Below, piece after piece: positions 1,273-63,798 of a stretch of 64,000 bases of DNA; position 1 is the stretch's first letter; each line of letters starts with the position of its first letter. Position numbers and translations under genes: made by a program. Location of the stretch: positions 310,001 through 374,000 of the forward strand of contig NIVC01000059.1 in the NCBI GenBank assembly GCA_002269645.1. The letters run 5' to 3'. The notes below the pieces were generated by a model. It did not search any database, had not been told where the DNA came from, and was given only the letters and a program-made list of their open reading frames with translations. This DNA comes from Macrostomum lignano. Its lineage: Eukaryota.

Positions 1273-2574
1273 CCGGGTGTCCGGATTGAACGGAAACGCT
1301 GCTGATTTTTTGAATATTTTTTGCAATTTCTCAGCAAGACAAGCAGCTGTACCATTTATTTTTGACAACAGTAAACAGGAAGGTGTCAGCATTGTTCTCA
1401 TTCAAAATGGCCGCCATTGGCCGCGATCACGCGCTCCAGCCTCTTCCTGAACTGCTGGCACACCTTCCTCACATAGTTGGTGTCCATTCTCTCCCACGCC
1501 AGCCGAACAGCAGCCTGCAGCGCTTCCACACTGCTGTGGCAGGATCTGCAGGCCTCGCTCTCCACACGCTGCCAGATTGAGAAGTCCAGCGGATTCAGGT
1601 CCGGACTGGAGGGCGGCCACATCGTCTTCGGCCAGAAGTTCGCCATGTTGTCTGCCAAGAACTGCTGGGTTGTGGCCGCTGTGTGAGCCGGAGCACCGTC
1701 CTGCTGCCACACGTACTGTCCGTCAGGGTACTGCTGATGCAGCCAAGGCAGCACGTGCTGCTGCAGCAGCTGCTGGTAGCATGCAGCATTCACTTTGGTG
1801 CCTGGGTTGATGAAAATGGGGGGACACCTCCGTCCATCACTCGCAACGACGCCCAGCATCATGATGGAGGCCGGGTGCTTAGACTTCATACTGTACTTCA
1901 CGTGGGCAGGTGTGTCCGCGCTGCTGGCGGCGCTGATGTAGCGAGTGTTGCGCCTGTTCACGGCTTGGTCACAGGTGAACAGTTTCTCGTCGCTGAACAC
2001 GCGCACCAGCGAGCCGTGGTTCTTCACCCACGTGAGCAACTGCCTGCAACGCTTGAGACGCGATACCTTCTGCTTCGAAGTGATGAGGTTCTTCGGCACC
2101 ACCACTCTGGACACCATGCCGAGGTCTTCTTTGACGAGCTCCGACATTGTCGTCTTGCTCATGTCGTGCTCACGTGCCAGTCGGCGAATCGACCTTCGGG
2201 GATTTCGGTTGACCTTCGCCCGGACGGCTGCGACGGTCTTCTTCGTCCTTTTTGTCCTCGGACGACCACCCCCATGTCTTTTGGTGACATCTCCTGTGTC
2301 GTTCAGCAGCTTCCTCACAGTGAAAATCCTCTTTCTGCTCACATTGAGCACTTCTCTGATGTCGCTAGTTGACTTTCCAGCGCAAAGTAATTCAGCGATT
2401 GCTCGTCTTTGAGCCTCGTGCTCAGCCATGGTTAGGAATAAAGCTGCAAGAGTGGATGTATTAAATTCTGTGATTTCTGCTGGTTCTGACACCCATGCAA
2501 AATTTTGAATTTTGCGAAAGATTACGTAATTAACGACGTTTTAAGCAGCGTTTCCGTTCAATCCGGACACCCGG
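1273..2574 (-). mobile_element. Tc1/mariner superfamily DNA transposon, maT (DD37D) type, apparently complete
   Basis: Perfect 31-bp TIRs (CCGGGTGTCCGGATTGAACGGAAACGCTGCT at 1273-1303, inverse at 2544-2574), TA on both flanks, one uninterrupted transposase ORF inside. Confidence 0.95.
1398..2429 (-). CDS. maT/Tc1-like transposase, ~343 aa
   Basis: Likely ATG at 2429 (MAEHEAQ). N-terminal HTH region; catalytic FSDEK, QQDGAPAH and SPDLNPLD, with 37 residues between the 2nd and 3rd Asp. No stops or frameshifts. Confidence 0.93.
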   Translation of the reverse strand: MAEHEAQRRAIAELLCAGKSTSDIREVLNVSRKRIFTVRKLLNDTGDVTKRHGGGRPRTKRTKKTVAAVRAKVNRNPRRSIRRLAREHDMSKTTMSELVKEDLGMVSRVVVPKNLITSKQKVSRLKRCRQLLTWVKNHGSLVRVFSDEKLFTCDQAVNRRNTRYISAASSADTPAHVKYSMKSKHPASIMMLGVVASDGRRCPPIFINPGTKVNAACYQQLLQQHVLPWLHQQYPDGQYVWQQDGAPAHTAATTQQFLADNMANFWPKTMWPPSSPDLNPLDFSIWQRVESEACRSCHSSVEALQAAVRLAWERMDTNYVRKVCQQFRKRLERVIAANGGHFE

Positions 2575-10754: not shown

Positions 10755-13700
10755 TCAGAAAGCGGTCATTATGTCCGCCTCGTTGGGGCCATGTACCTCG
10801 GAATCCTTGAGTTCATTGCTACCAGCTGCTGAGCAACCCTCGGATGCGCTGGGCCTCTGTCGCAATTTCGCTGCGAGCCTTTGGCTAATGTAGATGAGCA
10901 GCTCGACCACCTCGCAGACAGTCAGAATCGAGACGCCTGACCAGAGACCCAAGGCGCCTGTAGATTGAAAAAAATCGTTTACGATTCTAAGTGGGAATTC
11001 GATTGTCTACGTCTCTACGTAGCAAACAATTCGAATTAAATTTTTGCGATCGATACCGAAGTGAAATCATAGTGTATAGGTCACTCTGAAGTAGCTTTTA
11101 CAACCCCTAGGAACTGGCCTGTACTGGACTCTATAGGTGCAAGTTTTGTTTTAGTTCTCCCGACTTGCTTCCGCTTTGAGATCGCATTGGACTGAAACTC
11201 AACGCTGCAAAAGCTTTGGGAAAATTTTCAGAAACTTTTTGACGAAGTTTCGGTGCATTTTATTGCTTTTAATTTTTACCACACCGTGATCTGATTCGAA
11301 ACGCATGCTCGTAAAATATGAACGATTTCCTCCTATGTCTGCAACGAGATTCTTGGTAGGGTAGGCCTCCTCTTCGGTGATCTCCTGACCTTCGGAGGTC
11401 CACGCCTGAACTGTCAGTCTGGCCAGGCGGTTCTGCAGCGACTCGAGCTCTTTTTCGAAGCCCAGAATGTCCTTGGCGCTCTGATTGGCAAAAGGCACCC
11501 CGGTGAGGCTAAGTGACTTCAAGTACGCTTGGTAGAAATTGGCTACACCTCTAAGACCGCTAACGCTGGTCCGGTAGCCGTAGTTGCTTGCAAGCTTCTG
11601 CAATAGCAGAGTGGATCTGGCAGTCTTCAAGTTAGGCCACGGATAAGTGACGTAACGGACACTGTAGCCGTCTGTCCGACACGGAGACTGACAGCGCTTC
11701 ATCGCCTCAAACTCGTACTGGTTTATCCGCGATACCTGCTCATTGTACCGTATCTCAAGATCGATAGACAAGTTGCCGATGTCCTTGGCGTCGAAACAGT
11801 AGCTGTACTGGTCGAATAAGTCCACCTTGACTGGCAGAATCGACGGTAAACAGTTGCAGTTTTCGATGAACTGCTGTACAATGTACGAATTGATGCAATC
11901 CTCTCTACCGGAGACGTTGAACTGTCGCTCAGTGGCAGTCAGAACGCTGGATAAACGTTAAGTTATGACCAGTGAAATATCATGCACTTTTATCTGTTCT
12001 ACGCTCGTACCTTCGATGCTAGCTAAAGCTCACGCAATTATTTCTCAAGCACTGACCTTGAACTGTTCGGCAGTAGCAGCATCGCCCGGAGTCTACTGAT
12101 CATCTCAGACCAATTCCCAGAGTGGACGACCAACTCTGCAGCTTCCTCCATTCTGAAGAATGTTTAATTCAGTTTAAAGGAGCCATTGAAACCTTCTGCT
12201 TTAATTTGCCGTAGGCAATTTTCAAGAAAATTTAATGTCACTGAAGAAAGTTACCCACTTTAGGTCTTCGTTTGACATGGATTTCTTCCATGACGGCAGT
12301 CGATATACAATTGGCTCGGTGGTCTCTAGGCACGGCCTCGATGCAGTTGAGAGTCTGGAGTATCTTTCAAACCTGAGCTGCACGTCCATGCGTTGGGAGG
12401 CGGCCACGTCGATGCCCTTGGACGACCAGGGGAACGAATCTTCCGGAACAATGATCGCCTAGGAGTGGAAGGTTGTGGTAATAGTTTTGGATTTACGTGG
12501 GGTTTCTGCACTAGACTTCTTATTTTACAATCATTTGAGACATTTGACAATTTCATTTGAATTTTTAAAAATGTTTCGCATTTTGGCACAAAATAAAAGA
12601 AACATGCTTTCTAAGTCTTTCCAAGGTAGGTTCAGTCAAGTCTGCATTGACTTTCTGGATGTAACTTTTTTGTTACCTCAGGGTTAGCTTAGCTCTCGCT
12701 TTTGAGTTTGTAGTGTACAGTTTTGTGTGTTTTTGTCTTTGACTTCAGTCATTTTTATGATTCGGTGCAAAAATTTTTAATGACTACACCTCGATCAACT
12801 TTCCTTGTGTGCCTTTACTGATTCGCAAATGATATCTCATTGTGCACTTTCACATCCGGATTGTGATTCCTCTATCAAAAACACACCGCTTACCTTGAAA
12901 GCCAGGTCGCTGATCTCCAAGCTCATACCGTTATGAAACGCACTGGTCATTTCGGGCATGTCCTCGACTGTTTTCCCTTTAGAGTCTGTGGAGTCGGTGA
13001 AGTACGTTATTGACAGCTGACTCCCTGCTAGCTGGGTGCTCGACATGTTGGCGATGAAGCTCTGCTTGAGAAACTGGTGGCACATTCCCAGCTGCGGATG
13101 GTCGATATTGACGAAGTGCTCCTTGGTGCATTTCTGGCCAGCGAAGGTGCAGTCGGCCAGGCCGATGCTGAGGTCGTTGCTGAACTGCCTGGCGAGCAGG
13201 TGGCTGCCGACCGAGTCAGTGAAGACGCCTCTGACGCTGGTTTCAGCAGCTGAAATTTTTGTGCCGACAGGCAATGCGTGAAGCTCAGAATTTATAGTTT
13301 TAACAACTTTTAGGCTCCGACTTACAACAAGTAGGAATTGTGCAGCGTTCGAATGCCATCTCAAAAAACTGAGTTTGAAAAATTGGTACCGACATTGTGT
13401 GCAGCAGAGATGGATCGGCAAAGCAGACGGGAGAATTGGAGATTAACACTGGGTGCCGTCTGAAAGTGATGTTAAAAATGAGATGCAGTCGTTCTACAGC
13501 TGCTTGCAAAAAATGAGGCTAGTGAAACTCACGTGAAGGTGCCGTTCTCAGTTTCCGCTAGGTCAATAACTATGCTCACTGGACGACAAAAGTTGTCGCT
13601 GGTGTTCCCAATACGGTCGGGGGTTTGAATCTTTAGTCGCAGCAGTTTTTCAACAAAGCGAACACCTGAAATGCAATATTTATCAACTATAGTTCGGCGC

Positions 13701-16614
13701 ATTGGGTTCACTTCACGTGCATGTTGATTTAAAAACATCCATTCAGACGAATGAAAAGTTGCTGTTTTAAGATAGTGGGTGTGTGCTTTCTTGCTAATAA
13801 GATCGTAGCTAGATAGTCTTACTCCATCCACTCCCTAGGTGTGAAACTAAAACGGATACCAAAAATAGCACCAGCAAATCACTTGAACAATCGGCCTTCA
13901 AAATGTTTCTTTCCCTAGTTCGTTAGTGCCATTTTTGGTTTGCTAGTTTCCAACCGAGTACAAAAAATTGAAGAAATTGTTTTCCCTAGCAGAGATTAGA
14001 AAGTTCAGAAACGTACAAACCTTTATTGAGTTTCATCTTCATCTGCACGTTCTCCACGCTACTCCAAGGCAAACAGTCCCGGCCCGACTCTGTCCAGTTC
14101 GTCCGACCAGTGTACACCACATTCGCTCCGGCATTTTTGCTCACGGCGCAGTCGAACTCTTTAGTAGCGGCTGTAATGTGCTGCGTTAGTTTGTTAGATA
14201 AATCGCAACAGGCCACCCGCAGAGAATCGCCTAAGCTACCGAAGTTTCTTTCACCAGCCCTAAATTGATGTCTCAGTGAACGGAATGAATACTAGCTTCT
14301 TCGACTGCTTTGGCTGTAATCAACACCATTGACTCACCGCAGTAAGGGACGTCGCACAAGCCAGCGTTTAGTCTTTCAGAGTCCATGAAGAAGCAGTAGG
14401 GTCCGCCTGAATAAGCTTCCAATTGACCAAACCTTCCAATATGCATTGGTTTGTCTTCTAAAAGAAGTCACGGATTAAAGCTGATGGAGAAACTAATTAG
14501 CTTTATTAATTAGAGTATATTCAGCACACAAACCAACATCCCGGATGATCATAACAGCAGCGGTCCTGTCTGATCCGCATGGCTCCGTTTTGCTGTTGCC
14601 GCACTGCCTGTCGCAGCTGGTCCAGCTCCCGTCGGCCAGAGTGGCAGCGGCCTCGGAGCTGCCGCAGAGGCAGTCGCCGCGGTTCAGCAGCGCTGCAAAC
14701 GGAGCGTTGAACTTGTCGCAGCACTGGGCGCACGGCTCAAAGGCCTCCAGGCCTCCGCTGTAGCACGTGATGTTGAAAGCCGTGTCCGCTGTCACTGGGA
14801 AGCAGCCAATTATTTCCCGTCTGGGTCCTGTGTGAGCGCATGGAGTGCGTCAGTTCAAGAGTGAGAGAGTCAGTCAGTCAGTCAGTCAGTCAGTCAGTCA
14901 GTCAGTCAGTCAGTCAGTCAGTCAGTCAGTCAGTCAGCCAGTCAGTCAGTCAGTCAGTCAGTCAGTCAGTCAGTCAGTCAGCCAGTCAGTCAGTCAGTCA
15001 GTCAGTCAGTCAGTCAGTCAGTCAGTCAGTCAGTCAGCCAGTCAGTCAGCCAGTCAGTCAGTCAGTCAGTCAGTCAGTCAGTCAGTCAGTCAGTCAGTCA
15101 GTCAGTCAGTCAGTCAGTCAGTCAGTCAGTCAGTCAGTCAGTCAGTCAGTCAGTCAGTCAGTCAGTCAGTCAGTCAGTCAGTCAGTCAGTCAGTCAGTCA
15201 GTCAGTCAGTCAGTCAGTCAGTCAGTCAGTCAGTCAGTCAGTCAGTCAGTCAGTCAGTCAGTCAGTCAGTCAGTCAGTCAGTCAGTCAGTCAGTCAGTCA
15301 GTCAGTCAGTCAGTCAGTCAGTCAGTCAGTCAGTCAGTCAGTCAGTCAGTCAGTCAGTCACTCACTCACTCATTCACTCGCTAAGTCAGTCACTTACGAG
15401 TTGCAATTGGGAGAAACTCTGTCAGCGGCAAACCCGGAGGTAAGCGGCACCTGGACTCAGTCTCTGAGAAGTTGAGTTTCATCAGCAAGCCACCCAGTAC
15501 TTCAGCATTCGAGCTCCCTCTCTGCAGCATGCGTGCTGCATCATTCCATCGCATGCACTGCTTGTAGATCACGTAGGGCTGTACAGGTGGCTTAACCGAA
15601 TAGTTTCCAAGTGTTTTTGAATCGGAAGGATCAATCGTAATACTAGATGGCCCATAGACAACTGCATAGCTTGCGTTTCCAAGGTAGTTACTTCCGTCGA
15701 GACTTCTCCTACAGTCGGAGCTTTTATTTTTTGCTGCAAAAAATTGTTTTGACTCGCATTTTTGCGGGAAAATCTATTTTCACGCATTTATAATGCTGGA
15801 AATACATCGCTTAAAATTAATTTCAAGAATTTATAGTCACTGCTGAGTTCGTCTCGTAGAAAAGCAGCTGTAAGTACGAGTTATTCAATGTATAAACCGA
15901 CTTTTAGTCTCAGTACTGTAGCTTCTACCGGGGTTATGGGGATCTTTAGATGCTTACAGTCTTGCAGGTGCCAAGTGGATATCTAAGCTTAGTCGTGGAG
16001 GTGTCAGGTCGATCTCTAAAGCTAAGTAAATCTCGAAGGACCCGAGGTGAAGCTTAACTACACAAATTCGCAGGTTGTAGAAGGAAGCAAACATAAATTT
16101 AGAACTTTCAAGGCAGCTTACACTTTACTAGCAGTTTCAGTTGGCTCATCACGGCTGATTCAGTTTGCTCCAATGCAATCAAAAACGCTTGCGTCGGCTT
16201 GTTAAAAAAAATAGTTTCCGATTTAGACAAATCAAAGTCGTAAAGTTTGATTTTTTCGCTTGTGTTACTCTTAGAGCCGAGCTCTACATTGTAAATATCC
16301 GATGTCGACAGCATCGGAACAATTCTACTCATGGTGACGGCGTGAGTCGGGCAGATGTACACATCCGGGAACTGGTACGGCAGAGTGGACACCGTTATTG
16401 TTGTTAACACCGGAGCCTGCTGGTACCTGTCGAACAGGGTGTACAGGTGGTAGCCGAACCCGCTGTAGGTAGCCAGCAGAAAAGTGAGCCATAGTGACCT
16501 GCCGATGAAGCTGGACTGCTCAGAGAATCTGCCCAGTCCGTGAGCACTTGTGTAGCTGCAGAACTGCTTGACAGGTGAGCTCAGCTCATGCTGGTCAGCG
16601 GGTTCGCTGCTCAT
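10755..16614 (-). CDS. DEG/ENaC (FaNaC-like) channel subunit with kringle[WSC]-kringle ectodomain insert, copy A (~1035 aa; final splice donor anomalous)
   Basis: Exons 16614-16122, 15733-15398, 14827-14534, 14457-14338, 14230-14021, 13665-13580, 13518-13326, 13249-12894, 12458-12259, 11946-11330, 10957-10755 (3108 nt). Motifs: FCSYTSAHG, TM1, FPDVYICP, GMCHQF, thumb CNC, LVADIGG-ALGLWSGVSILTVCE TM2. Confidence 0.88.
14868..15362. repeat. (CAGT)n microsatellite in channel A intron 2
   Basis: ~120 tandem units. It explains the SQSV ORFs. Confidence 0.98.
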
Positions 16615-19127
16615 CGCTGGGGTTCGTCTGGGATGCAGCTAAAATGGAAGCTAGTATTATCTTTCTGTCTATATAGCCTATTTGCTGAGCTGCTGAGCTC
16701 CCTATATAGCCTATGGCTGCCAACTTTGTGTTCTCTCCCGTTAGGTGTAGCAGGCTCCCCAGTAAGTCAGCAATGGATTTGGTCCAGCCAGTGGCTGCAA
16801 AGTTATTTAATTATTTATTTTTATTCCGCAAAATATTTTAGCTAATTAGCCACATCAATAGTCATCAATCAAGTCATTATATATCGACTATTTCAAGCCG
16901 GATCAGTGAGTAGTTGACTAATAAAATCTACTGACTTTGAAGTTGTCCGGCGGGGGGGGGCTTTTGATACTACAGCAGATCAGAGTGACTAATAGACCCG
17001 CAGTCAGCTAAAACCCAAGCTGTCATGCATGCCATTACATGACCCTGAGACCGCTCAAGCATACGGATGCATACACAGCGGCCCTGTCTTTCTTCTTTGC
17101 ACGAAAATTGCTAGAAAAAGTGGCAATAACCATAACATGCAATCACTCTTACTGCAGCAACGGGATCGCAAGCCAAATGTCGTATAAGGCTTAACTACAT
17201 TGAACTACATTGAGTCGTAGGATGAAAAGTCGAGGGCGATTCTCTGCGGGTAGGGGGGGGGGAGTTGAGGAGGCGATTCTCTGCGGGTAGGGGGGTCGAT
17301 GGTGATTCTTTCGGTGGGGTTTCACTTGGACAGGTACTGACAAGTGTCACAGCAGGCAGTTGTTGTGCACCCGGCTTACTTTCTCACCGTCGGAAATTTG
17401 CTACACGTAAAAGTTCTACGTCACCTATACTGGCTGAATGCATGTCAAGGACTTCTAATCTAAAGCTTTCTAATTTGTCTATGGCAAAACCTCATTCAGC
17501 GCAATGCATTTAAAAGAAAAGAAGACAGTTGCATTTGAAACAACACAACAGTATTTTGATCGTTTTCGCTCTTCAGTACTTTAGCTTTTTGCAGTTCATT
17601 TGGGTTTACGCGCATTTATTGCAACTTAATCTAAGATGATTGTTACACAATTGCAATGTCGAAAAGCGTGCATTAAATCCTATAGTCTATGGTGACTCCC
17701 CATCTCACGCCAACCAAAAAGCAGAGGACCAAAGGAGAGGACCAAAAAGTCCTCTGCTGCACGCAGTGTGAAGTCTATCGTCATTGATGGTCCTAAAATT
17801 AAAATCCTGATTAAGTAAGTACGTGCAGACTTTTTTGAAGCATGGAAGCTATTGAGAAGAAGCATGAGTTATGCGTTATTCGTTTTCTGTTTTTCTCGTT
17901 TTCTATCAAATACACATTAATTGTTTATTAGTCTATGGTACACCCGGTCTTTCCCGAAACCATTAAATCATTTAATGGGCTCCGTTTGAAGACCATTGTA
18001 ATTATACTTTTACCCAGACGCAATGAAAAAATATTTTGGCCATTATTCCACAGTTTTGATGTGTACCATAGACATTTGGATTGAAAAAATCCATCGCTCA
18101 GTATTTTTGTTAATAAATACAGAACAACAAGAAGTAAATGAACAAAAAGGAAAAATAATTAAAACTAAAGTACCAGCTACACGAAAAGAGTTAATAATAA
18201 ATGTCACAGCTAGTGCAGTTCATCAGTTTGTAGTCGAATTTGACAATGTAAAAATCAATTTGTCACCCAAAGTGAAACATGCACAGTTCTCAAAGCCGCA
18301 GTTTCCAAAGATGCTCGACACTTTAACCTGATGATTTGGCACTGCAAAAGGAGTTGGTCTATGTTGAATGTTTTCTATGAAAGAGAAATACAGGTGCTCA
18401 AGTATAGTTGCCGAACTTACCATTTGAAAGATGCACATCTTGGTTAAGTTGGCATGCGACTGATGAGCTTCGTCTGATGAGCTTCTTTGGTACCGCAGTA
18501 TCCAAGCTGGGATTCTTTGGGACTGTCGGCTGCTCGACTGAATCGATTGGCCGCTTTCAGGCATCGTTTATAGCCGTCGAGGCGTTGAAGACTGCATGGT
18601 CGCGTTTTCTTCCTAGGTAGCGCCGCACGGTTCGTTCAGTCGTCGACAGGAAGATTTTTTCAATTAATAAGCGCGGCTGTTTGACGAGATGCACTATAGC
18701 CATAGTTGTTTGACAAGACAAATAACTTTTTCTCCACACTACTCGCTTTCCTGATTTCTTGCAAGAAGCAAGCAAATCAGCACTCATCACAGTGTTGTCT
18801 ATGGTCAAACTAAGCCACACAACTCAGTCGTCTATGGGTAAAACAACTCTTAAAACAGCCAATTGAAGCATGATAAAAAGTATGGAATAATGACCGCGAC
18901 AAAAGTGTGGAGTAATGGCCGCAAAAGTGTGGAACAATGACTGCGCGCTGAGTGAAAGTATAGATACAATGCACTTGTATAGTATGCAACTTCGTTGAAT
19001 AATGGCCATAGACACTCGTGCGCTACGATACTATACAATACTACCATTAAATGATTTATTGGTCCCGGTATAGAAGTATTTGTACCATAGACTATTGATT
19101 CCTTGCTGCGAGGGCGCCCATTAAAGG

Positions 19128-20517
19128 TCAATAAAATAAGCAATTGGATTTTATATGATAAAAGCGTGCATTAAATGTATAATCATTTGTTAACCATGTC
19201 GTAGTATTTCGCAGAAACATTAGATAGCGCTCTACCGTTCGTGTGCTTTTTTTGCCGGTGATCTTGCAAATGTCAGCATTTAAGAAGCTATCATCGGCGA
19301 GTTCTTTCACAACTGTTGGACGCACGCAGTGGGCGGTGTACCGACGACTAAGTCCAGCAGCTTGTGAAATGGTCGACATGAGACTCGCCAAGGTGTTGAC
19401 ACCGACAGGCTGTTTAGCACAGTACCAATTAGACGTTTTCCAGTTGGAAACTTTTGGCTTCAAAAAGAAAGGCGTGCCTGGAGCAGCACCAGAGCTGCTG
19501 CTAGAAATCGACTCGCTTTGCTTACGTAGATACATTTTTAGTGCCTCGACTGGGCACTTTTCTGCGATTGAGACCATCACCGCGTTCTTGTAGTCATCGC
19601 ACGCTTCTCGGTTGAGGCTGTTGCCTACATTCTTAACTTTGCCAAGCCTAAGCTGCACAACCTCCGCTCCGTCGGGCCTCTTCTCAAAGATAAAGCTGTT
19701 CTCACTGAGTCAGCGAAGCCACTCGCGTCCCCGATTTCCAAAGTAATAGATGCAGTTGTAATAAACTTCGTGCAACAACGCCGTCGGATTTTCTCTGCTG
19801 AAGTAAGCGGCCAGTTTGCGCAAATCGTCCTCCTCCAGGTCTTCAAAATGTTTAGATCTGCCACCTGCACTGATGAAACTACGAGCCAGTGCTTTCAAGG
19901 TCGCATTGGCATTAGAGAACTCTCTGTCGGAAATGATATTCATTCGCCTGGTCTTCATCAGATGTCGGTACAATGCCGCTCGCATACAAATCAGAGTAGA
20001 CGATGCCGGAAGGTTGCCGTCACGCTTCCTGAAGGTTCCATAGAACAACCGTAGTGCAGATGCAATGGCCTCAGCGGAATTGGTTTGCAGATCGACACGG
20101 GCCTAAAAAGTTACGACGTTCAAAAGCAATACAAGAATTGACGAAAAGACCTATAGAAAATCTGAATTCAAAGCATGTAGAATACAAAGATTAACTGAAA
20201 CCACAGGATATCTGATTTCGAAGCAACTAACCTCGGGATGTTCATCCATGAACGTGTTCAGCTTTTTTTACATAACATTCGGCTTGCTGTCTGCTACTGG
20301 CGTTCTCTGCTGAGCGTTCCAACTCGGAAATCGCAGCCTCCAGCCTGTTTAAATCAGGCTCGGTGCTCATCAGCTCCTCCAGCATGGCGTCATCGATATC
20401 TTCGGGCAAAGCATAGTTGGTGTCCAGCGGTCCATTATCAAGCTCCTCCTGCGTCCGATCGCGAGCATGTTGTTCGAGTGTTTTATCCGACTCGACAGAG
20501 GACGGGCCGCTAACCAT
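19128..20517 (-). pseudogene. Crypton-type tyrosine recombinase (DUF3504-like), disrupted
   Basis: FYGTFRKRDG...GNRGRE...CPVEALKMYL...PVGVNTL...YTAHCVR...TGKKS...ERY matches the YR catalytic layout. Intron at 20231-20103. Lesions: in-frame TGA at 19712-19710 and a +1 frameshift in an A7 run near 20265. The usual TGH is TGK. Confidence 0.85.
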
Positions 20518-22100: not shown

Positions 22101-22502
22101 TTCTATCTAAAAAATGTCTGAAATGAACGCGCGCAAAGCAAAGTGTACAGAGCCCATGCTGCTTCCGCACTGCACACCAAGTCCGATGACAGCAAAATTA
22201 GATTTCAAAAACACCATCACCAAAGCGAGTTAAATGTCTGCCTGCTGGCATATTGATGCAGCTCAGAAAAAAATCCATCTACCGATCATTCACCATCCAC
22301 CGTTTCACTGACGGGGAATCCGCAAACAGATGCTCCGCCAACGATCGGATCAGACTGCATGCACTTTTACACGGCTTTTTGCTGGCCAATAACTGGCTGG
22401 CTGGCTGATCAGCAAACGCATAAATGCAGCAGTGCCTCAATTGAAATGCTTCCAATGCTTCAAATCCTGCTCAGCATCAGATAGTCACCAACCAGCCCAA
22501 CG

Positions 22503-25500
22503 ATGAGCAGCGAACCCACTGACCAGCATGAGCTGAGCTCACCTGTCAAGCAGTTCTGCAGCTACACAAGTGCTCACGGACTGGGCAGATTCTCTGAGCA
22601 GTCCAGCTTCATCGGCAGGTCACTATGGCTCACTTTTCTGTTGGCTACCTACAGCGGGTTCGGCTACCACCTGTACACCCTGTTCGACAGGTACCAGCAG
22701 GCTCCAGTGTTACAAACGATAACGGTGTTCACTCTGCCGTATCAGTTCCCGGATGTGTACATCTGCCCGACTCACGCCGTCACCATGAGTAGAATTGTTC
22801 CAATGCTGTCGACATCGGATATTTACAATGTAGAGCTCGGCTCTAAGAGTAACACAAGCGAAAAAATCAAACTTTACGACTTTGATTTGTCTAAATCGGA
22901 AACTCTTTTTTTTAACAAGCCGACGCAGGCGTTTCTGTTTGCATTGGAGCAAACTGAATCAGCCGTGATGAGCCAACTGAAACTGCTAGTAAAGTGTAAG
23001 CTGCCTTGAAGGTTCTAAATTTATGTTTGCTTCCTTCTACAACCTGCGAACTTGTGTAGTTAAGCTTCACCTCGGGTCCTTCGAGATTTACTTAGCTTTA
23101 GAGATCGACCTGACACCTCCACGACTAAGCTTAGATATCCACTTGGCACCTGCAAGACTGTAAGCATCTAAAGACCCCCATAACCCCGGTAGAAGCTACA
23201 GTACTGAGACTAGAAGTCGGTTTATACATTGAATAACTCGTACTTACAGCTGCTTTTCTACGAGAGCGAACTCAGCAGTGACTATAAATTCTTGAAATTT
23301 ATTTTAAGCGATGTATTTCCAGCATTATAAATGCGTGAAAATATATTTTCCCGCAAAAATGCGAGTCAAAACAATTTTTTGCAGCAAAAAATAAAAGCTC
23401 CGACTGTAGGAGAAGTCTCGACGGAAGTAACTACCTTGGAAACGCAAGCTATGCAGTTGTCTATGGGCCATCTAGTATTACGATTGATCCTTCCGATTCA
23501 AAAACACTTGGAAACTATTCGATTAAGCCACCTGTACAGCCCTACGTGATCTACAAGCAGTGCATGCGATGGAATGATGCAGCACGCATGCTGCAGAGAG
23601 GAAGCTCGAATGCTGAAGTACTGGGTGGCTTGCTGATGAAACTCAACTTCTCAGAGACTGAGTCCAGGTGCCGCTCACCTCCGGGTTTGCCGCTGACAGA
23701 GTTTCTCCCAATTGCAACTCGTAAGTGACTGACTTAGCGAGTGAGTGACTGACTGACTGACGGACGGACTGACTGACTGACTGACTGACTGACTGACTGA
23801 CTGACTGACTGACTGACTGACTGAATGACTGACTGACTGACTGACTGACTGACTGACTGACTGACTGACTGACTGACTGACTGACTGACTGACTGACTGA
23901 CTGACTGACTGACTGACTGACTGACTGACTGACTGACTGACTGACTGACTGACTGACTGACTGACTGACTGACTGACTGACTGACTGACTGACTGACTGA
24001 CTGACTGACTGACTGACTGACTGACTGACTGACTGACTGACTGACTGACTAACTGACTGACTGACTGACTGACTGACTGACTGACTGACTGACTGACTGA
24101 CTGACTGACTGACTGACTGACTGACTGACTCTCTCACTCTTGAACTGACGCACTCCATGCGCTCACACAGGTCCCAGACGGGAAATAATTGGCTGCTTCC
24201 CAGTGACAGCGGACACGCTGAATGCTTTCAACATCACGTGCTACAGCGGAGGCCTGGAGGCCTTTGAGCCGTGCGCCCAGTGCTGCGACAAGTTCAACGC
24301 TCCGTTTGCAGCGCTGCTGAACCGCGGCGACTGCCTCTGCGGCAGCTCCGAGGCCGCTGCCACTCTGGCCGACGGGAGCTGGACCAGCTGCGACAGGCAG
24401 TGCGGCAACAGCAAAACGGAGCCATGCGGATCAGACAGGACCGCTGCTGTTATGATCATCCGGGATGTTGGTCTGTGTGCTGAATATACTCTAATTAATT
24501 AAGCTAATAATTTCTCCATCAGCTCTAATCCGTGACTTCTTTTAGAAGACAAACCAATGCATATTGGAAGGTTTGGTCAATTGGAAGCTTATTCAGGCGG
24601 ACCCTACTGCTTCTTCATGGCCTCTGAAAGACTAAACGCTGGCTTTTGCGACGTCCCTTACTGCAGTGAGTCAATGGTGTTGATTATACAGCCAAAGCAG
24701 TCGAAGAAGCTAGTATTCATTCCGTTCACTGAGACATCAATTTGGGGCTGGTGAAAGAAACTTCGGTAGCTTAGGCGATTCTCTGCGGGTGGCCTGTTGC
24801 GAACTATCTAACAAACTAACGCAGCACATTACAGCCGCTACTAAAGAGTTCGACTGCGCCGTGAGCAACAATGCCGGAGCGAATGTGGTGTACACTGGTC
24901 GGACGAACTGGACAGAGTCGGGCCGGGACTGTTTGCCTTGGAGTAGCGTGGAGAACGTGCAGATGAAGATGAAACTCAACCAAGGTTCGTGTGTTTCTGA
25001 ACTTTCTAATCTCTGCTAGGGAAAACAATTTCTTCAATTTTTTGTACTCGGTTGGAAACTAGCAAATCAAAAATGGCACTAACGAACTAGGGAAAGAAGC
25101 ATTTTGAAGGCCGATTGTTCAAGTGATTTGCTGGTGCTATTTTTGGTATCCGTTTTAGTTTCACACATAGGGAGTAAGACTATCTAGCTACGATCTTATT
25201 ATTGGGCTGTTAGGAAAGTTCTGTCCGTTTTGAGTAAAATAGGTTGGAGCGAGTTTTTATAGGAACGCAGCAGTGTTACTCAGTAAAATAATTGCCATCG
25301 CAATCGATGACCCTCTGCTAACGAGAGGGCAGACTTTGGAAGCCAGCTCTGTAGAAATCCTTGGGCTGTGATTCAAAAAAGTTAGTAATGCAGTCTTTGA
25401 CCCCTTTGTCATCTTCAAACGTTTTCTCTTTCAGATGATGGTGCAGCGCTCGAAAAAGATGGTAGTCTGTAGGGGCCAGATCGGGGCTGTAAGGTGGGTG

Positions 25501-28500
25501 GGGCAGCCCTTCCCAGCCCAGATCCAGCAGCTTTTGTCGGGTCAAATTGGCGGTGTGCGGCCGAGCGTTGTCATGAAGGAAGCGAACATGCTGACGCCCT
25601 GGACGCTGTGTGCGGAGGCAGTCGGCCACATTCTGCAGCTGGTTACAGTAGAGCTCGGCGGTGATGCTGGTGTTGGGCGGCAGCAGCTCGAAGTATACAA
25701 CTCCTTCACTGTCCCACCAACAGCAGAGCATCACCTTCTTAGGGTGCAGTGGGGCCTTTGGCTCTGGCTGTGGCGGCTTGCTGGCATCGACCCACTGGCG
25801 CTTGCGGTGTATATTAACGTACATCACCCACTTCTCATCACCAGTGAGTATTGAGGCCAGCCAGTCTGTTGTTCTCTTGTAGAAGAGCAGTGAGGTGCAA
25901 ATGTCTGCTCGGCTTTGACGGTCCCTGTCAGTCAGGTCATGGGGGGTCCACTGTCCGAGCTTGCTTTTCTTGCCCATGGCAGCCAGGTGTTCAGCGACTT
26001 GCACATGGGAGCACCCGAGAGTGGCTGCCAGCTCTCATGTAGTCTGGTGCGGATTGGCCTCCACAAGTGTCCGCAGCAGCTCAGTGTCTATCTCAGATGG
26101 GCGTCCAGGGCGAGGTTCGTCAGCAAGGCTGTAGTCGCCGCTGCGAAAGCGATCAAACCAACGACGGGCTGTGCGGTCAGAGACAGCATCCTGGCCAAAT
26201 GCACTGCACAGGCGTCGAGTCGATTCGGCTGCTGTAATACCTGCTAGAAAATCATATAGCATGCACTGCCTTAGAGCGATGCTGTTTAATTCAAAATTTC
26301 TGGCCATAATTGGGCGCTGAAAAGCAAATGACTTGGTTAGAATGACCACAACTCTGGCTGTATATGCATAACACAAGTATTGGATCCAACACAGCTTCAT
26401 GATCCTCTGCATAGAAAAATAAAAAAACGGACAGAACTTTCCTAACAGCACACACCCACTATCTTAAAACAGCAACTTTTCATTCGTCTGAATGGATGTT
26501 TTTAAATCAACATGCACGTGAAGTGAACCCAATGCGCCAATGCGCCGAACTATAGTTGATAAATATTGCATTTCAGGTGTTCGCTTTGTTGAAAAACTGC
26601 TGCGACTAAAGATTCAAACCCCCGACCGTATTGGGAACACCAGCGACAACTTTTGTCGTCCAGTGAGCATAGTCATTGACCTAGCGGAAACTGAGAACGG
26701 CACCTTCACGTGAGTTTCAGTAGCCTCATTTTTTGCAAGCAGCTGTAGAACGACTGCATCTCATTTTTAACATCACTTTCAGACGGCACCCAGTGTTAAT
26801 CTCCAATTCTCCCGTCTGCTTTGCCGATCCATCTCTGCTGCACACAATGTCGGTACCAATTTTTCAAACTCAGTTTTTTGAGATGGCATTCGAACGCTGC
26901 ACAATTCCTACTTGTTGTAAGTCGGAGCCTAAAAGTTGTTAAAACTATAAATTCTGAGCTTCACGCATTGCCTGTCGGCACAAAAATTCCAGCTGCTGAA
27001 ACCAGCGTCAGAGGCGTCTTCACTGACTCGGTCGGCAGCCACCTGCTCGCCAGGCAATTCAGCAACGACCTCAGCATCGGCCTGGCCGACTGCACCTTCG
27101 CTGGCCAGAAATGCACCAAGGAGCACTTCGTCAATATCGACCATCCGCAGCTGGGAATGTGCCACCAGTTTCTCAAGCAGAGCTTCATCGCCAACATGTC
27201 GAGCACCCAGCTAGCAGGGAGTCAGCTGTCAATAACGTACTTCACCGACTCCACAGACTCTAAAGGGAAAACAGTCGAGGGCATGCCCGAAATGACCAGT
27301 GCGTTTCATAACGGTATGAGCTTGGAGATCAGCGACCTGGCGTTCAAGGTAAGCGGTTTGTTTTTGATAGAGGAATCACAATCCGGATGTGAAAGTGCAC
27401 AATGAGATATCACTAGCGAATCAGTAAAGGCACACAAGGAAAGTTGCTCGAGGTGTAGTCATTAAAAATTTTTGCACCGAATCATAAAAATGACTGAAGT
27501 CAAAGACAAAAACACGCAAAACTGTACACTACAAACTCACAAGCGAGAGCAGATAACCCTAAGGCACAGATATTATATAGTATCTGTGCCCTGAGGTAAC
27601 AAAAAAGTTACATCCAGAAAGTCAATGCAGACTTGACTGAACCTACCTTGGAAAGACTTAGAAAGCATGTTTCTTTTATTTTGTGCCAAAATGCGAAACA
27701 TTTTTAAAAATTCAAATGAAATTGTCAAATGTCTCAAATGATTGTAAAATAAGAAGTCTAGTGCAGAAACCCCACGTAAATCCAAAACTATTACCACAAC
27801 CTTCCACTCCTAGGCGATCATTGTTCCGGAAGATTCGTTCCCCTGGTCGTCCAAGGGCATCGACGTGGCCGCCTCCCAACGCATGGACGTGCAGCTCAGG
27901 TTTGAAAGATACTCCAGACTCTCAACTGCATCGAGGCCGTGCCTAGAGACCACCGAGCCAATTGTATATCGACTGCCGTCATGGAAGAAATCCATGTCAA
28001 ACGAAGACCTAAAGTGGGTAACTTTCTTCAGTGAAATCAAATTTTCTTGAAAATTGCCTACGGCAAATTAAAGCAGAAGGTTTCAATGGCTCCTTTAAAC
28101 TGAATTAAACATTCATCAGAATGAAGGAAGCTGCAGAGTTGGTCGTCCACTCTGGGAATTGGTCTGAGATGATCAGAAGACTCCGGGCGATGCTGCTACT
28201 GCCGAACAGTTCAAGGTCAGTGCTTGAGAAATAATTGCGTGGAGCTTTAGCTAGCATCGAAGGTACGAGCGTAGAACAGATAAAAGTGCATGATATTCCA
28301 CTGGTCATAACTTAACGTTTATCCAGCGTTCTGACTGCCACTGAGCGACAGTTCAACGTCTCCGGTAGAGAGGATTGCATCAACTCGTACATTGTACAGC
28401 AGTTCATCGAAAACTGCAACTGTTTACCATCGATTCTGCCAGTCAAGGTGGACTTATTCGACCAGTACAGCTACTGTTTCGACGCCAAGGACATCGGCAA

Positions 28501-29361
28501 CTTGTCTATCGATCTTGAGACACGGTACAATGAGCAGGTATCGCGGATAAACCAGTACGAGTTTGAGGCGATGAAGCGCTGCCAGTCTCCGTGTCGCACA
28601 GACGGCTACAGTGTCCATTACGTCACTTATCCGTGGCCGAACCTGAAGACTGCCAGATCCACTCTGCTATTGCAGAAGCTTGCAAGCAACTACGGCTACC
28701 CAACCATCATTAGCGGACTTAGAGGTGTAGCCAATTTCTATCAAGCGTACTTGAAGTCACTTAGCCTCGCCGGGGTGCCTTTTGCCAATCAGAGCGCCAA
28801 GGACATTCTGAGCTTCGAAAAGGAGCTCGAGTCGCTGCAGAACCGCCTGGCCAGACTGACAGTTCAGGCGTGGACCTCCAGCAGTCAGGAGATCACCGAA
28901 GAGGAGGCCTACCCTACCAAGAATCTGGTTGCGGACATCGGAGGTAAATACTTGCGTACAATGTAGTCATTGAGCAGTTGATGTTTAAGTATAAGGCTTT
29001 GCTTGCGTGAATATGGGGACAGTTAAGTGCGGAGGATACTACTAGTGTGCATCGAGAATTTGCCAGTTTGTGAAAGGAATTTTCCTTTGAAGCCTTAACA
29101 CAGAGTAATTTAACTACGGCGTGGCTGGATTTGTAAATATTCACTGTTTGCACTGCACCATCAGGCGCCCTCGGCCTCTGGTCTGGCATCTCAATCCTAA
29201 CTCTGTGCGAGCTGCTCGAGCTGCTCATCTACATCAGCCGCGGGCTGGCCCGCAGACCTCAGCAGAATCCGAGTCGAGAGCGACAACAAACAGCAGCTGG
29301 TGGAGTCAGCCAGTTGGACCCAGAAGCAGTCGGCCTGGAGTCTGGCAAGATTGCGCTCTGA
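22503..29361 (+). CDS. DEG/ENaC (FaNaC-like) channel subunit with kringle[WSC]-kringle ectodomain insert, copy B (1035 aa)
   Basis: Exons 22503-22995, 23385-23720, 24171-24470, 24546-24665, 24775-24984, 26577-26662, 26724-26916, 26993-27348, 27814-28013, 28327-28943, 29165-29361. All GT-AG and in frame (3108 nt). TM2 LVADIGGALGLWSGISILTLCELLELLIY. Confidence 0.9.
23746..24130. repeat. (GACT)n microsatellite in channel B intron 2
   Basis: Inverted counterpart of 14868-15362, about 25 units shorter. Confidence 0.98.
25202..26449 (-). mobile_element. Mariner (DD34D) element, inactive, in channel B intron 5
   Basis: TA then TTGGGCTGTTAGGAAAGTTCTGTCCGTTTT; the inverse TIR at ~26424-26449 lacks its outer 4 bp. 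CDS 26307-25276 has WTPHDL, TGDEKW, HDNARPH, YSPDLAPTD and two nonsense codons (26037-26035, 25320-25318). Absent from copy A. Confidence 0.93.
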
Positions 29362-31397: not shown

Positions 31398-33040
31398 CAA
31401 CAACACAACAACAAAAACAACAAAGTACGCTGTCAGGTGACTTTGTACGTAGTGTACAAAGTCAGCGTCAGAGCCTGGGCGCGAACAAAGGCCGCACCAC
31501 TGGCAGAGTCCGGGGCGCCAGCGTGGGTCGGCAGGCAGTCGACGAAACGTCGAGTTCGGGCCTGGTCGCGCCGGTAGGGTGCCTGCAGCGTTAGCAGCAG
31601 CACCTCCTGCACCGGCTGCGGGCAGTAGGACTCGGCGCGGATGATGTGGCCTGCCAGCTGGAGTCGCCGAAGTCGCAGCAGTTAACTTGGACGGGCCAGG
31701 CCGGCGCGGCGATAGAGTGCCGCATTGGTGATCCGCTCGTCGCTGATCTTAAAGGCGGCACGCAGCAGGCCAGCGTGCGCCGCGTTGACTTGCTGTTCGA
31801 GCGAATTTGTCAGCGTCCAGGTCTCGGTGTTGTACAACAGGACGGTCTCGCCTGGAACAGCGCCGCCCTCTGGCGGTCAGGTAGGGCCTCGGACTGCAGG
31901 ACCGCCCTCACAGAGCGAAAGGCAGCCCAAGCGAGCCCGCGGCGACGCCGCAGATCTTCGCGGACGTCAGGTACCAGACCGCCGAGGTAGACGAACTGCT
32001 GACAGCGCGGAAGCTCCGTTACCTGCCCGCCAGCGCCTCGGCAGAAAATTGCGGCCTCGATGTCACCCGGCACGCAGAGCACAACGGTCTTCTTCGTGTT
32101 GACCACCAGGCCGACGCTCGCTGCAGCGCTAACTAGCTTGTCCAGCTGGCGCTGGGCGCCCTCTACGGTCGAGGACAGCAGGGCGAGGTCATCGGCGTAG
32201 CCAAACACGCTGAGCCGTTTCTCCGGTTGACGTCGACCCACGCGTCGCCGCAGTAGGAAGCCGTCTTCGTCGGTATGAATAGCAGTTCGTAGCACCCAGT
32301 CAAGCACCAGGACGAACAGGAACGGCGCTAGAGTGTCCCCCTGGAGCACCCCGGAGAATGTCTCGAAGGAGTCCGACAGGCCGTCCGGCGTCATCACAGC
32401 TGCTCTCGTAGCACAGTACAACGCCATAATGGCGGAGATCAGCTGTTCTGGTACATGATACGCTCGGAGCAGGGATCGCAGCCCTCGCAACCGAGTCGAA
32501 TGCCTTCATGAAGTCAATGAAGACAACAATCAGGTCCAACTGGCGCGTGCGCGCCTCCTCGATGATTCGGCGGAGAGCTAGGATCTGCGCCACTATGCCA
32601 CGGTGGGGCTAAAACCCGTTCTGCTCAGGTCGCAGGTAGGGATCCAGCACCGGTTGCAACCGTGATAGCAGCATCCGGTTGAACGACAGCACAGCACAGG
32701 ATTGCAGGCAGATGCCTCGGTGCTCGCGTCTAGTCGTGTAGTGCCCGGCTTCTTTGGAATGGCGATGATGTGCACCATGGTCCACTCGGTGGGTGCCATT
32801 TCACCTAAGAGCACGCGGTTCATCACACGGGCGACCTCACTGGCCACACAGTGGATGCGCAGCGCCTCGATGGGCACCTCGTCCAGACCCAGCGCCTTGC
32901 CGCCCGGCGTCTTCTGGGCAAGAATTACAACTTCAGCCATGGTGACTGGTGCAACGTTAAAACTGTCCTCAGACGGCAACGGCGTCTCTGGCGGCAGCGT
33001 CAGGATGTTGGGCAAGGATGTTGGGTACACATTCAGGTTC
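31398..33040 (-). mobile_element. 5'-truncated, frameshifted non-LTR retrotransposon (RTE-like reverse transcriptase)
   Basis: IAIPKKP, QILALRRIIE, FIDFMKAFDSV, GVLQGDTLAPFLF, GYADD and FVYLGG are spread over several frames; a (TTG)-rich tract lies at ~31398-31420. Confidence 0.92.
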
Positions 33041-37974: not shown

Positions 37975-38886
<912 letters not shown>

Positions 38887-39974: not shown

Positions 39975-53511
<13,537 letters not shown>

Positions 53512-57310: not shown

Positions 57311-57734
57311 TCAGACATGCAATAATCACAGGTCAGACTAGAACCCTTGAGAAAAGGCTGCCGCTCTATTGCGCAATTTTGAGTCAATTACAAAAGCACG
57401 CATGCGCATTTTTAGCTACACACTAGCAATCTTCGCCCCCCGTTGGGGGACATCTGGATAGAATCTCTGTTCTCTACAAGTAACAAAAAGACAGCCAAAT
57501 AAAGCCTTCACAAAGACGACAGACAAACTGCTCTAATAAAGTGTAATGCAAAAAGAAATCATCCCAAGACAGCAAGCATCCCCCAGATTGCAAGCATCCC
57601 CCAGATAGCAAGCATCCCGAAAAAGTAAGCATCCACCATAAAATAAGTAGCTAGTGCTACAATTTCCTTAGCTCTATAGTGGCTCCTTTAAAATTGGCAT
57701 GACGCTTAATTTTACGTTTGAAATTGTGTAAATT

Positions 57735-63700: not shown

Positions 63701-63745
63701 TTTAATGTTTGACATTGTGGCTCTTGTGTGTTTGACATAGCGCTT
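57735..63745. repeat. 23-bp satellite (ATGTTTGACATGGTGGCTCTTTA), ~6 kb, with higher-order block duplications
   Basis: Direct. Blocks 60353-61895 and 61921-63857 are tandem duplicates that include unique flank. Confidence 0.97.
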
Positions 63746-63798
63746 CTTTTATGTTTAGCAGTTTTTTGTTTTTAAGGTGTTTTAATAAAAAATCATTT

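Follow-up and report, generated by a model that had tools for sequence, protein, structure and literature searches.

The window analyzed here, a stretch of 64,000 nucleotides (nt) of the Macrostomum lignano genome (GenBank assembly GCA_002269645.1, contig NIVC01000059.1, positions 310,001 to 374,000), contains on its plus strand, at window positions 22503-29361, an intact gene whose predicted product is firmly placed as a subunit of a DEG/ENaC (ASC-family) channel, with the FaNaCs as its closest solved relatives. The finger domain of this subunit is predicted to be interrupted by a cassette in which a WSC module is nested within a split kringle and a second kringle follows. The explanation that we consider best, at a probability of about 0.5, is that this kringle(WSC)-kringle cassette of 391 residues serves the channel as a built-in sensor of, or tether to, macromolecules, and not as a pocket for a small ligand. 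DEG/ENaC channels sense protons, peptides, proteases, and force through one scaffold in which the finger encodes the diversity, and the known elaborations of the finger (the GRIP domain of ENaC and the extra domain of the nematode proteins) are family-specific folds. Here, recognizable mobile modules appear to have been shuffled into the finger and then kept through the expansion of a gene family.

Gene model

When the three frames are read together with the splice signals, 12 exons join into a single uninterrupted open reading frame (ORF), with the ATG at 22503, GT-AG introns throughout, and the stop codon at 29359-29361. The spliced product is a DEG/ENaC subunit of 1043 amino acids (aa); a preliminary description of this locus had proposed a spliced protein of 1035 aa, of which the spliced frame was borne out and the length was not. 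One small exon (exon 10) was corrected by comparison with the full-length paralog P0005, a transcriptome-derived model with which all the exon junctions agree. Among the 18 peptide motifs listed in the preliminary description, 17 lie on the plus strand where they had been placed, and the exception, DIGGALGLWSGIS, spans the junction of exons 11 and 12 and was recovered in the spliced protein. The exons are as follows.

22503..22995, plus strand: exon 1, ending in phase 1; ATG, short cytoplasmic N terminus with the HG motif (AHGLGRF), first transmembrane helix (TM1), FPDVYICP strand, and finger alpha1, placed by an ASC N-terminal match to FaNaC residues 61-158
23385..23720, plus strand: exon 2, phase 1-1; N-terminal half of kringle-1, Cys1-Cys3 (DCRRSLDGSNYLG, QCMRW, SRCRSPPG)
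24171..24470, plus strand: exon 3, phase 1-1; one complete WSC module with 10 Cys, nested between Cys3 and Cys4 of kringle-1
24546..24665, plus strand: exon 4, phase 1-1; C-terminal half of kringle-1, Cys4-Cys6 (GGPYCFF, FCDVPYC), with an acceptor supported by the paralogs P0005 and P0004
24835..24984, plus strand: exon 5, phase 1-1; kringle-2 part a, Cys1-Cys2 (FDC, YTGRTNWTESGRDCLPW)
26577..26709, plus strand: exon 6, phase 1-2; kringle-2 part b, Cys3 (DNFCRP)
26783..26916, plus strand: exon 7, phase 2-1; kringle-2 part c, Cys4-Cys6 (SPVCF, RCTIPTC); the module block ends here, in phase 1
26993..27348, plus strand: exon 8; the channel resumes with a finger alpha2/alpha3-like stretch (SHLLARQFSNDLSIGLADC), followed by DCTFAGQKC and GMCHQF (beta-ball/palm); it aligns to Aplysia FaNaC 7yvb from residue 184, and the Pfam ASC profile resumes at ~132-150
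27814..28013, plus strand: exon 9; extracellular domain, palm strands
28120..28215, plus strand: exon 10; short extracellular exon (MKEAAELVVHSGNWSEMIRRLRAMLLLPNSS), added after the P0005 comparison
28327..28943, plus strand: exon 11; thumb and palm, rich in Cys, as far as ADIGG
29165..29361, plus strand: exon 12; GIS filter motif within the second transmembrane helix (TM2; ALGLWSGISILTLCELLELL), followed by the cytoplasmic tail and the stop codon

Exons 2 to 5 are each of phase 1-1, and the block of exons 2 to 7 is both entered and exited in phase 1. Phase-1 module exons are the classic signature of the exon shuffling of extracellular modules, and a kringle that holds a complete WSC exon between its Cys3 and Cys4 would be an unusually clean example of the shuffling of a module into a module. 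Because the block is of phase 1 at both ends, skipping of the whole block would keep the reading frame.

The channel core

The Pfam ASC profile (PF00858) matches the protein with 153.4 bits (cut-off, 23.6) in two stretches that are split by the insert, and the paralogs score between 76 and 174 bits with the same profile. The HG motif is found at residues 24-30, and TM1 spans approximately residues 39-61. The best-scoring solved relatives are the FaNaC of Aplysia (7yvb; 3.8e-16) and FaNaC1 of Malacoceros (8on7; 5.5e-15), well ahead of the ASICs and ENaC. TM2 (DIGGALGLWSGISILTLCELLELL) is nearly identical to that of both FaNaCs, and its stretch ALGLWSGISILTLCELLELL contains GIS, a G-x-S selectivity-filter motif that has been described for FaNaC1 (PMC11026163). 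The ASC score and the FaNaC matches thus uphold the identification as a DEG/ENaC with a FaNaC-like TM2.

The closeness to FaNaC is one of sequence proximity only; the finger residues of the window protein, split by the insert, are not alignable with the FaNaC finger. Published trees put some M. lignano genes beside, not inside, the FaNaC clade, and three other M. lignano DEG/ENaCs near that clade gave no currents with the tested peptides (RFamides) in oocytes (PMC9234716). It was considered whether the channels assayed by Dandamudi et al. (2022) belong to the kringle/WSC subfamily; this was rejected, since the identifiers differ and so do the two N termini shown.

Position of the cassette in the finger

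The cassette comprises residues 166-556 (exons 2 to 7), close to the ~400 extra residues estimated at first, and consists, in order, of the N-terminal half of kringle-1, the WSC module, the C-terminal half of kringle-1, and kringle-2. The N-terminal stretch of the ASC profile match runs to ~129, and the C-terminal stretch starts from 132-150. Immediately before the cassette, PTQAFLFALEQTESAVMSQLKLL is predicted to be helical, a hint that comes from a low-confidence full-length AlphaFold2 (AF2) model only. After the cassette, SHLLARQFSNDLSIGLADC-TFAGQKC aligns with the helix pair that precedes beta3 in FaNaC. Because a helix-forming stretch precedes the cassette and an alpha2/alpha3-like stretch follows it, the insertion is assigned to the alpha1-alpha2 loop, and the layout is read as alpha1 - cassette - alpha2/alpha3, i.e., the finger would be interrupted and not replaced. 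In this respect the preliminary description, in which the modules stood in place of the finger, needs revision, as the flanking finger helices appear to be kept on both sides. The alpha1-alpha2 interval is the one occupied by the GRIP domain in ENaC (PMC6197857), and alpha1-alpha3 of FaNaC form the peptide pocket, the closure of which starts gating (PMC11026163). Eight N-glycosylation sequons are present in the cassette and fit an extracellular location.

The WSC and kringle modules

The WSC module is solidly predicted. The product of exon 3 alone scores 29.9 bits with the Pfam WSC profile (PF01822; gathering score, 27.8), and 25.9 bits are obtained within the whole protein; the corresponding modules of the paralogs P0010 and P0159 reach 39.1 and 41.4 bits, respectively. 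A WSC profile built from six paralogs matches Kremen1 (1.3e-8) and yeast Wsc1 (1.8e-8). A Foldseek search with the AF2 model of the cassette, which is of modest confidence (predicted local distance difference test [pLDDT], 63) and from which only the WSC fold is confirmed, gave Kremen1 (1.5e-4) and Wsc1 (6.8e-4, with a TM-score of 0.58 on the target).

Both kringles appear divergent, with long loop insertions, and are supported by profile-profile comparison. Kringle-2 scores 17.7 bits with the Pfam kringle profile (PF00051; gathering score, 34.3), and this over its N-terminal third only; kringle-1 has no Pfam match, and a hidden Markov model (HMM) search of the PDB sequences with the WSC module excised found no kringle. 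The paralog kringles score 14-24 bits. Pfam therefore recovers the ASC and WSC assignments of the preliminary description and leaves both kringles below the gathering score. On the other hand, a kringle-2 profile built from the paralogs matches the kringles of HGF, prothrombin, tPA, and ROR at ~1e-6, and residues 392-455 match tandem HGF kringles in phmmer (E value, 1.8e-6). In the exhaustive library search described below, the paralog profile also draws true multi-kringle proteins, confirmed by Pfam, through the segment formed by the C-terminal half of kringle-1 and the N-terminal half of kringle-2.

The profile-profile comparison was made with hhalign against a reference profile of six kringles validated by Pfam at 73-113 bits and 40 kringle domains extracted from the library matches. 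Kringle-1 without the WSC module gave a probability of 97.5% (E value, 7.7e-12; score, 63; template columns 1-84), and kringle-2 gave 98.5% (E value, 2.2e-15; score, 81; template columns 6-84), with all six Cys in register in each case. The controls (reversed, WSC, and 20 column-shuffled profiles) did not exceed a probability of 9.6% or a score of 20. Because of these matches with clean controls, the location of the WSC module between Cys3 and Cys4 of kringle-1 was accepted, and the arrangement proposed at the outset, in which a WSC module splits the first of two kringles, is supported. Kringle-1 is detected by profile-profile comparison only, and only when the WSC exon is removed. Foldseek with the cassette model gave no kringle-only match; Kremen1 was aligned over 203 columns with a high root mean square deviation.

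The canonical lysine-binding site of kringles consists of Asp55/Asp57, Trp62, Arg71, and Trp72 (plasminogen numbering). In the hhalign alignment, the canonical lysine-binding residues are absent from both kringles. Kringle-1 has P/G at the two Asp positions and Y for Trp62, and the WSC module is inserted in the same loop, while in kringle-2 V/I stand in for the two Asp residues and V replaces Trp62. To carry over lysine binding from known kringles, as had been suggested, is unsafe, since conservation is lacking at the anionic and aromatic positions and the loop concerned is broken up by the WSC module.

Paralogs, conservation, and the twin copy

With the insert as the query, four M. lignano UniProt entries named "WSC domain-containing protein," with Pfam WSC and ASC domains, were retrieved. 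Profile searches added more, among them two GenBank models: BOX15_Mlig006056g1 (P0005), a full-length protein of 1049 aa with 48% identity, and BOX15_Mlig013355g1 (P0007). The Mlig_3_7 annotation in GenBank was built from a genome-guided RNA-seq transcriptome (StringTie/TACO, with ORFs by TransDecoder; PMC5730564). As P0005 and P0007 are BOX15 models from this RNA-seq-based annotation, the assignment of the kringle/WSC exons to the channel mRNA is supported in these two paralogs. The splicing of the module exons into the channel mRNA, presumed in the preliminary description, is thus borne out for paralogs, whereas the searches turned up no RNA-derived model of the window locus. The P0005 locus has the same exon layout as the window gene.

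At least seven paralog lineages of M. lignano keep the insert; the exhaustive library search described below brought in some of the lineages, including Mlig007204/028168, Mlig034226/026586, and P0024/P0166. Twenty cysteines of the cassette are shared by all of eight paralogs, down to ~25-33% identity, wherever the segment in question is present. The P0024 lineage is without the WSC module and the C-terminal half of kringle-1, and the module content therefore varies. Identity of the paralogs to the window protein is 32-54% in kringle-1, 24-36% in WSC, 20-36% in kringle-2, 21-68% in the remaining ectodomain, and 12-31% in the alpha1 region; judged by these alignments, the conservation of the modules among the paralogs, at 24-54% identity, is comparable to that of the channel ectodomain, at 32-68%, and higher than that of the alpha1 region.

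The gene has a near-identical neighbor in the window, and a transposable element is present in one of the two copies.

10788..16621, minus strand: second gene copy, head-to-head with the window gene and with the same exons, including those of the kringle/WSC modules; it corresponds to UniProt A0A1I8HN37 (P0001)
25203-26452, minus strand: mariner/Mos1-type element of ~1250 bp, inserted in intron 5 of the plus-strand copy; its inverted terminal repeats of 29 nt are 97% alike

The two copies (10788-16621, minus strand, and 22496-28949, plus strand) are 96-98% identical in DNA, introns included. The limits of the identity lie 7 nt ahead of the start codon and 6 nt beyond exon 11; the last exons, which encode TM2, are 56% identical, and the twin copy has a different, intact-looking TM2 exon. 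An AG located 8 nt before the start codon of the window gene (CCAACCAG followed by CCCAACG and the ATG; window 22480-22502), near the end of the likeness between the copies, could be a candidate spliced-leader trans-splice acceptor; spliced-leader trans-splicing is common in M. lignano. A simple recent duplication is disfavored by the sharp ends of the homology together with the different last exon, and the pattern looks like gene conversion between older neighboring paralogs, which fits at least as well. P0003 is also a mosaic of near-identical and diverged blocks.

The ratio of nonsynonymous to synonymous differences (pN/pS) between the two window copies is 0.26; for the insert alone, 11 changes give a pN/pS of 0.52, a comparison of little power. 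The twin copy has a 6-nt deletion in the WSC exon, and its reading frame is open through the shared exons. Its exon-11 donor is GA instead of GT, apparently by loss of the T (window 11325-11335, minus strand), so the last intron of this copy may not be canonically spliced, and the copy may be defective. The transposase of the mariner element is split into two ORFs, one with HTH_48 and the other with Transposase_1 (107 bits). The element is absent from the twin copy and was therefore inserted after the copies were homogenized.

Distribution of the architecture

A profile of three paralogs was searched exhaustively with HMMER against 1.84 billion representative proteins. Eleven matches fell below 1e-30, and those whose source was looked up are from M. 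lignano; the weaker matches were WSC-repeat proteins, genuine multi-kringle proteins, and ASC N termini. This search found no kringle(WSC)-kringle channel arrangement outside M. lignano. Word-indexed protein searches returned M. lignano proteins only, and no non-Macrostomum ASC relatives came from that route.

When the top 150 matches were screened with local HMMs for co-occurrence of the domains, one non-Macrostomum protein with both ASC and a kringle was found, XP_078661500.1 of amphioxus (P0133; LOC144905634; 1559 aa; Branchiostoma floridae x belcheri). Its ASC match (290 bits) is broken at profile position ~129 by an insert of ~1100 aa (residues ~150-1225) that carries two F5/8-C (discoidin) domains and, just before the channel resumes, a canonical kringle (residues 1116-1195; 73 bits). 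A degenerate kringle-like stretch (~591-666) and repeated Cys-rich units of unknown type are also present in this insert. The amphioxus protein resembles the window protein in that ASC is broken at the same position by adhesion-type modules, with a kringle next to alpha2, but it is without WSC and has F5/8-C domains and a kringle of canonical type. It is a RefSeq prediction, and common origin and convergence are both possible.

Full-text literature searches found no description of a DEG/ENaC with kringle, WSC, or discoidin modules, or of the Mlig gene identifiers. The novelty that had been thought possible does not extend to the databases, as the architecture is already in UniProt/NCBI as an uncharacterized "WSC domain-containing protein" (WSC and ASC) and is not confined to the window gene. 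The kringle/WSC channel architecture is thus undescribed in the searched literature, not unseen in databases.

Proposed role of the cassette and alternatives

If the cassette acts as a sensor or tether, it would project at the upper, outer corner of every subunit in the trimer, at the site of peptide binding in FaNaC and of GRIP in ENaC, and would form a rigid, glycosylated, disulfide-rich stack at this gating-coupled corner. It would bind a large extracellular partner, i.e., a carbohydrate of the matrix or glycocalyx or a secreted or surface protein, and the occupancy or pull of this partner would be passed via alpha2 and the thumb to the pore, thereby tuning or triggering opening. Gating of the window channel by a protein or glycan, or its tethering, is a reasonable hypothesis.

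Several observations weigh against this explanation. No RNA-derived (BOX15) model was recovered for the window locus, such models coming from paralogs only, and the phase-1 entry and exit of the module exons mean that skipping isoforms would stay in frame. Both window kringles are below the Pfam gathering score, and, since the canonical lysine-binding residues are absent, homology does not point to a ligand. For WSC domains in general, the binding of carbohydrates is putative. The AF2 models (pLDDT, 63 for the cassette and 36.7 for the full-length protein, from a 9-sequence alignment) give no geometry of the cassette relative to the finger or thumb. In addition, the three other near-FaNaC channels of M. 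lignano were silent with the tested peptides in oocytes (PMC9234716).

The first two of these points, in particular, would be expected from an annotation or evolutionary artifact, in which the module exons are rarely included, or this copy is a decaying duplicate in a highly duplicated genome, and the 1043-aa protein is not the main product. The mariner element in intron 5, the lost GT donor after exon 11 of the twin copy, and the fragmentary and inconsistent older UniProt models of these loci point in the same direction. Nevertheless, all 12 exons have good splice sites and join into an intact ORF, pN/pS against the twin copy is 0.26, the same architecture is found in the RNA-derived paralog models, and conservation is as high in the modules as in the channel core, all of which make an artifact improbable. 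Among functional alternatives, the cassette could be a GRIP-like autoinhibitory or regulatory domain that holds the channel shut, or modulates it, until it is cut by a protease or displaced by a cofactor. It occupies the same insertion site as ENaC GRIP, a furin-type RPRR lies exactly at the junction of the N-terminal half of kringle-1 and the WSC module (residues 277-280; nt ~23720/24171), and, among known proteins, protease zymogens and the proteins that partner them typically carry kringles. However, RPRR is present in the window clade and P0003 only, the other paralog lineages having SVFR, MLRL, LLQR, and MHLY; a second cleavage site is not evident; and a disulfide-locked stack of three modules is not a short excisable tract. 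We are accordingly quite doubtful of a GRIP-like role.

The cassette could also be an anchoring or assembly module without a role in gating, which localizes or clusters the channel (at cilia, at the rhabdite- or mucus-rich epidermal surface, or at the basal lamina) or mediates the assembly of subunits or partners, with gating left to peptide, pH, or ions. Modules of these types typically occur in extracellular proteins that serve in adhesion or as receptors, with Kremen1 and Wsc1 as the best matches; the paralog expansion is large, with a variable module content (the P0024 lineage); and the FaNaC-like core is kept. Such a passive role is made less likely by the insertion in the part of the ectodomain that is most strongly coupled to gating, and not at a terminus or in a neutral loop, and we consider it unlikely, if the least strained of the three alternatives. 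The sensor or tether explanation would, in turn, have a practical use: if the cassette binds matrix, glycan, or protein, a construct from which it is deleted would allow tether or macromolecular gating of a DEG/ENaC to be tested. M. lignano is tractable for transgenesis, and tests by expression and knock-down are feasible.

A broader and speculative extension is that the alpha1-alpha2 loop is a general plug-in socket for extracellular sensor modules, so that the M. lignano channels and, independently, the amphioxus channel would be self-contained channels that are tethered to matrix or glycan or gated by macromolecules. We offer this tentatively, with the odds clearly against it. If true, these would be the first DEG/ENaCs in which the gating stimulus is read by shuffled adhesion modules within the subunit, and the tether model of DEG/ENaC mechanosensation, long debated, could be approached through them directly.

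Other features of the window

The remaining features of the window are repeats and ORFs with Pfam hits.

23726-24130 and 14868-15392: (TGAC)n microsatellite, forming much of intron 2; the unit is repeated ~101 times in one gene copy and ~131 times in its twin
57733-63756: tandem array, 23-bp satellite x261
46389-48749: tandem array, 24-bp repeat x85-98
37975-38886: tandem array, (AGAT)228
50503-51519: tandem array, (GTCT)260
1398-2492, minus strand: Tc1-like DDE_3 transposase
19128-19658, minus strand: DUF3504 fragment, located between the two channel genes
31810-32490, minus strand: reverse-transcriptase fragment
48911-49804, plus strand: ORF with a PSI (plexin repeat) domain

Read on the opposite strand, the (TGAC)n microsatellite yields a spurious ORF of 171 aa, (SQSV)n, and the 24-bp repeat generates spurious ORFs of 750-800 aa. 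The large tandem arrays explain why the right half of the window has strong GC/AT skews. The PSI-domain ORF may be part of another gene.

Comparison with known systems

The window protein shares with the FaNaCs (7yvb and 8on7) the TM2 with its GIS motif, the HG motif, and the overall ASC layout. In FaNaC, the compact alpha1-alpha3 finger is the peptide pocket, whereas in the window protein ~390 aa of kringle/WSC sequence would separate alpha1 from alpha2. The GRIP domain of ENaC is, like the cassette, a lineage-specific insertion between finger alpha1 and alpha2, and it contacts the finger and thumb and controls gating (PMC6197857). GRIP, a small domain of beta-sheet structure, contains inhibitory tracts that proteases can excise, while the flatworm cassette consists of three recognizable shuffled modules with 22 cysteines; no sequence relationship between the two was detected.

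To our knowledge, Kremen1 and Kremen2, the Wnt/Dkk coreceptors, are the sole well-known animal proteins that combine a kringle and a WSC domain, and Kremen1 is the top match of the window WSC module in both sequence and fold. Kremen has a serial Kringle-WSC-CUB arrangement with a single transmembrane helix, whereas the window protein is an ASC channel with two transmembrane helices, in which the WSC module is predicted to be nested in the first of two kringles; Pfam gave no match to CUB. A WSC domain is carried in a mechanosensory context by polycystin-1. A parallel to the proposed tether is the matrix tether model of the nematode degenerins MEC-4 and MEC-10, in which a DEG/ENaC is likewise coupled to the extracellular matrix; in Caenorhabditis elegans, however, the extra domain of the degenerins is neither a kringle nor a WSC domain, and the links to the matrix are the separate proteins MEC-1, MEC-5, and MEC-9.

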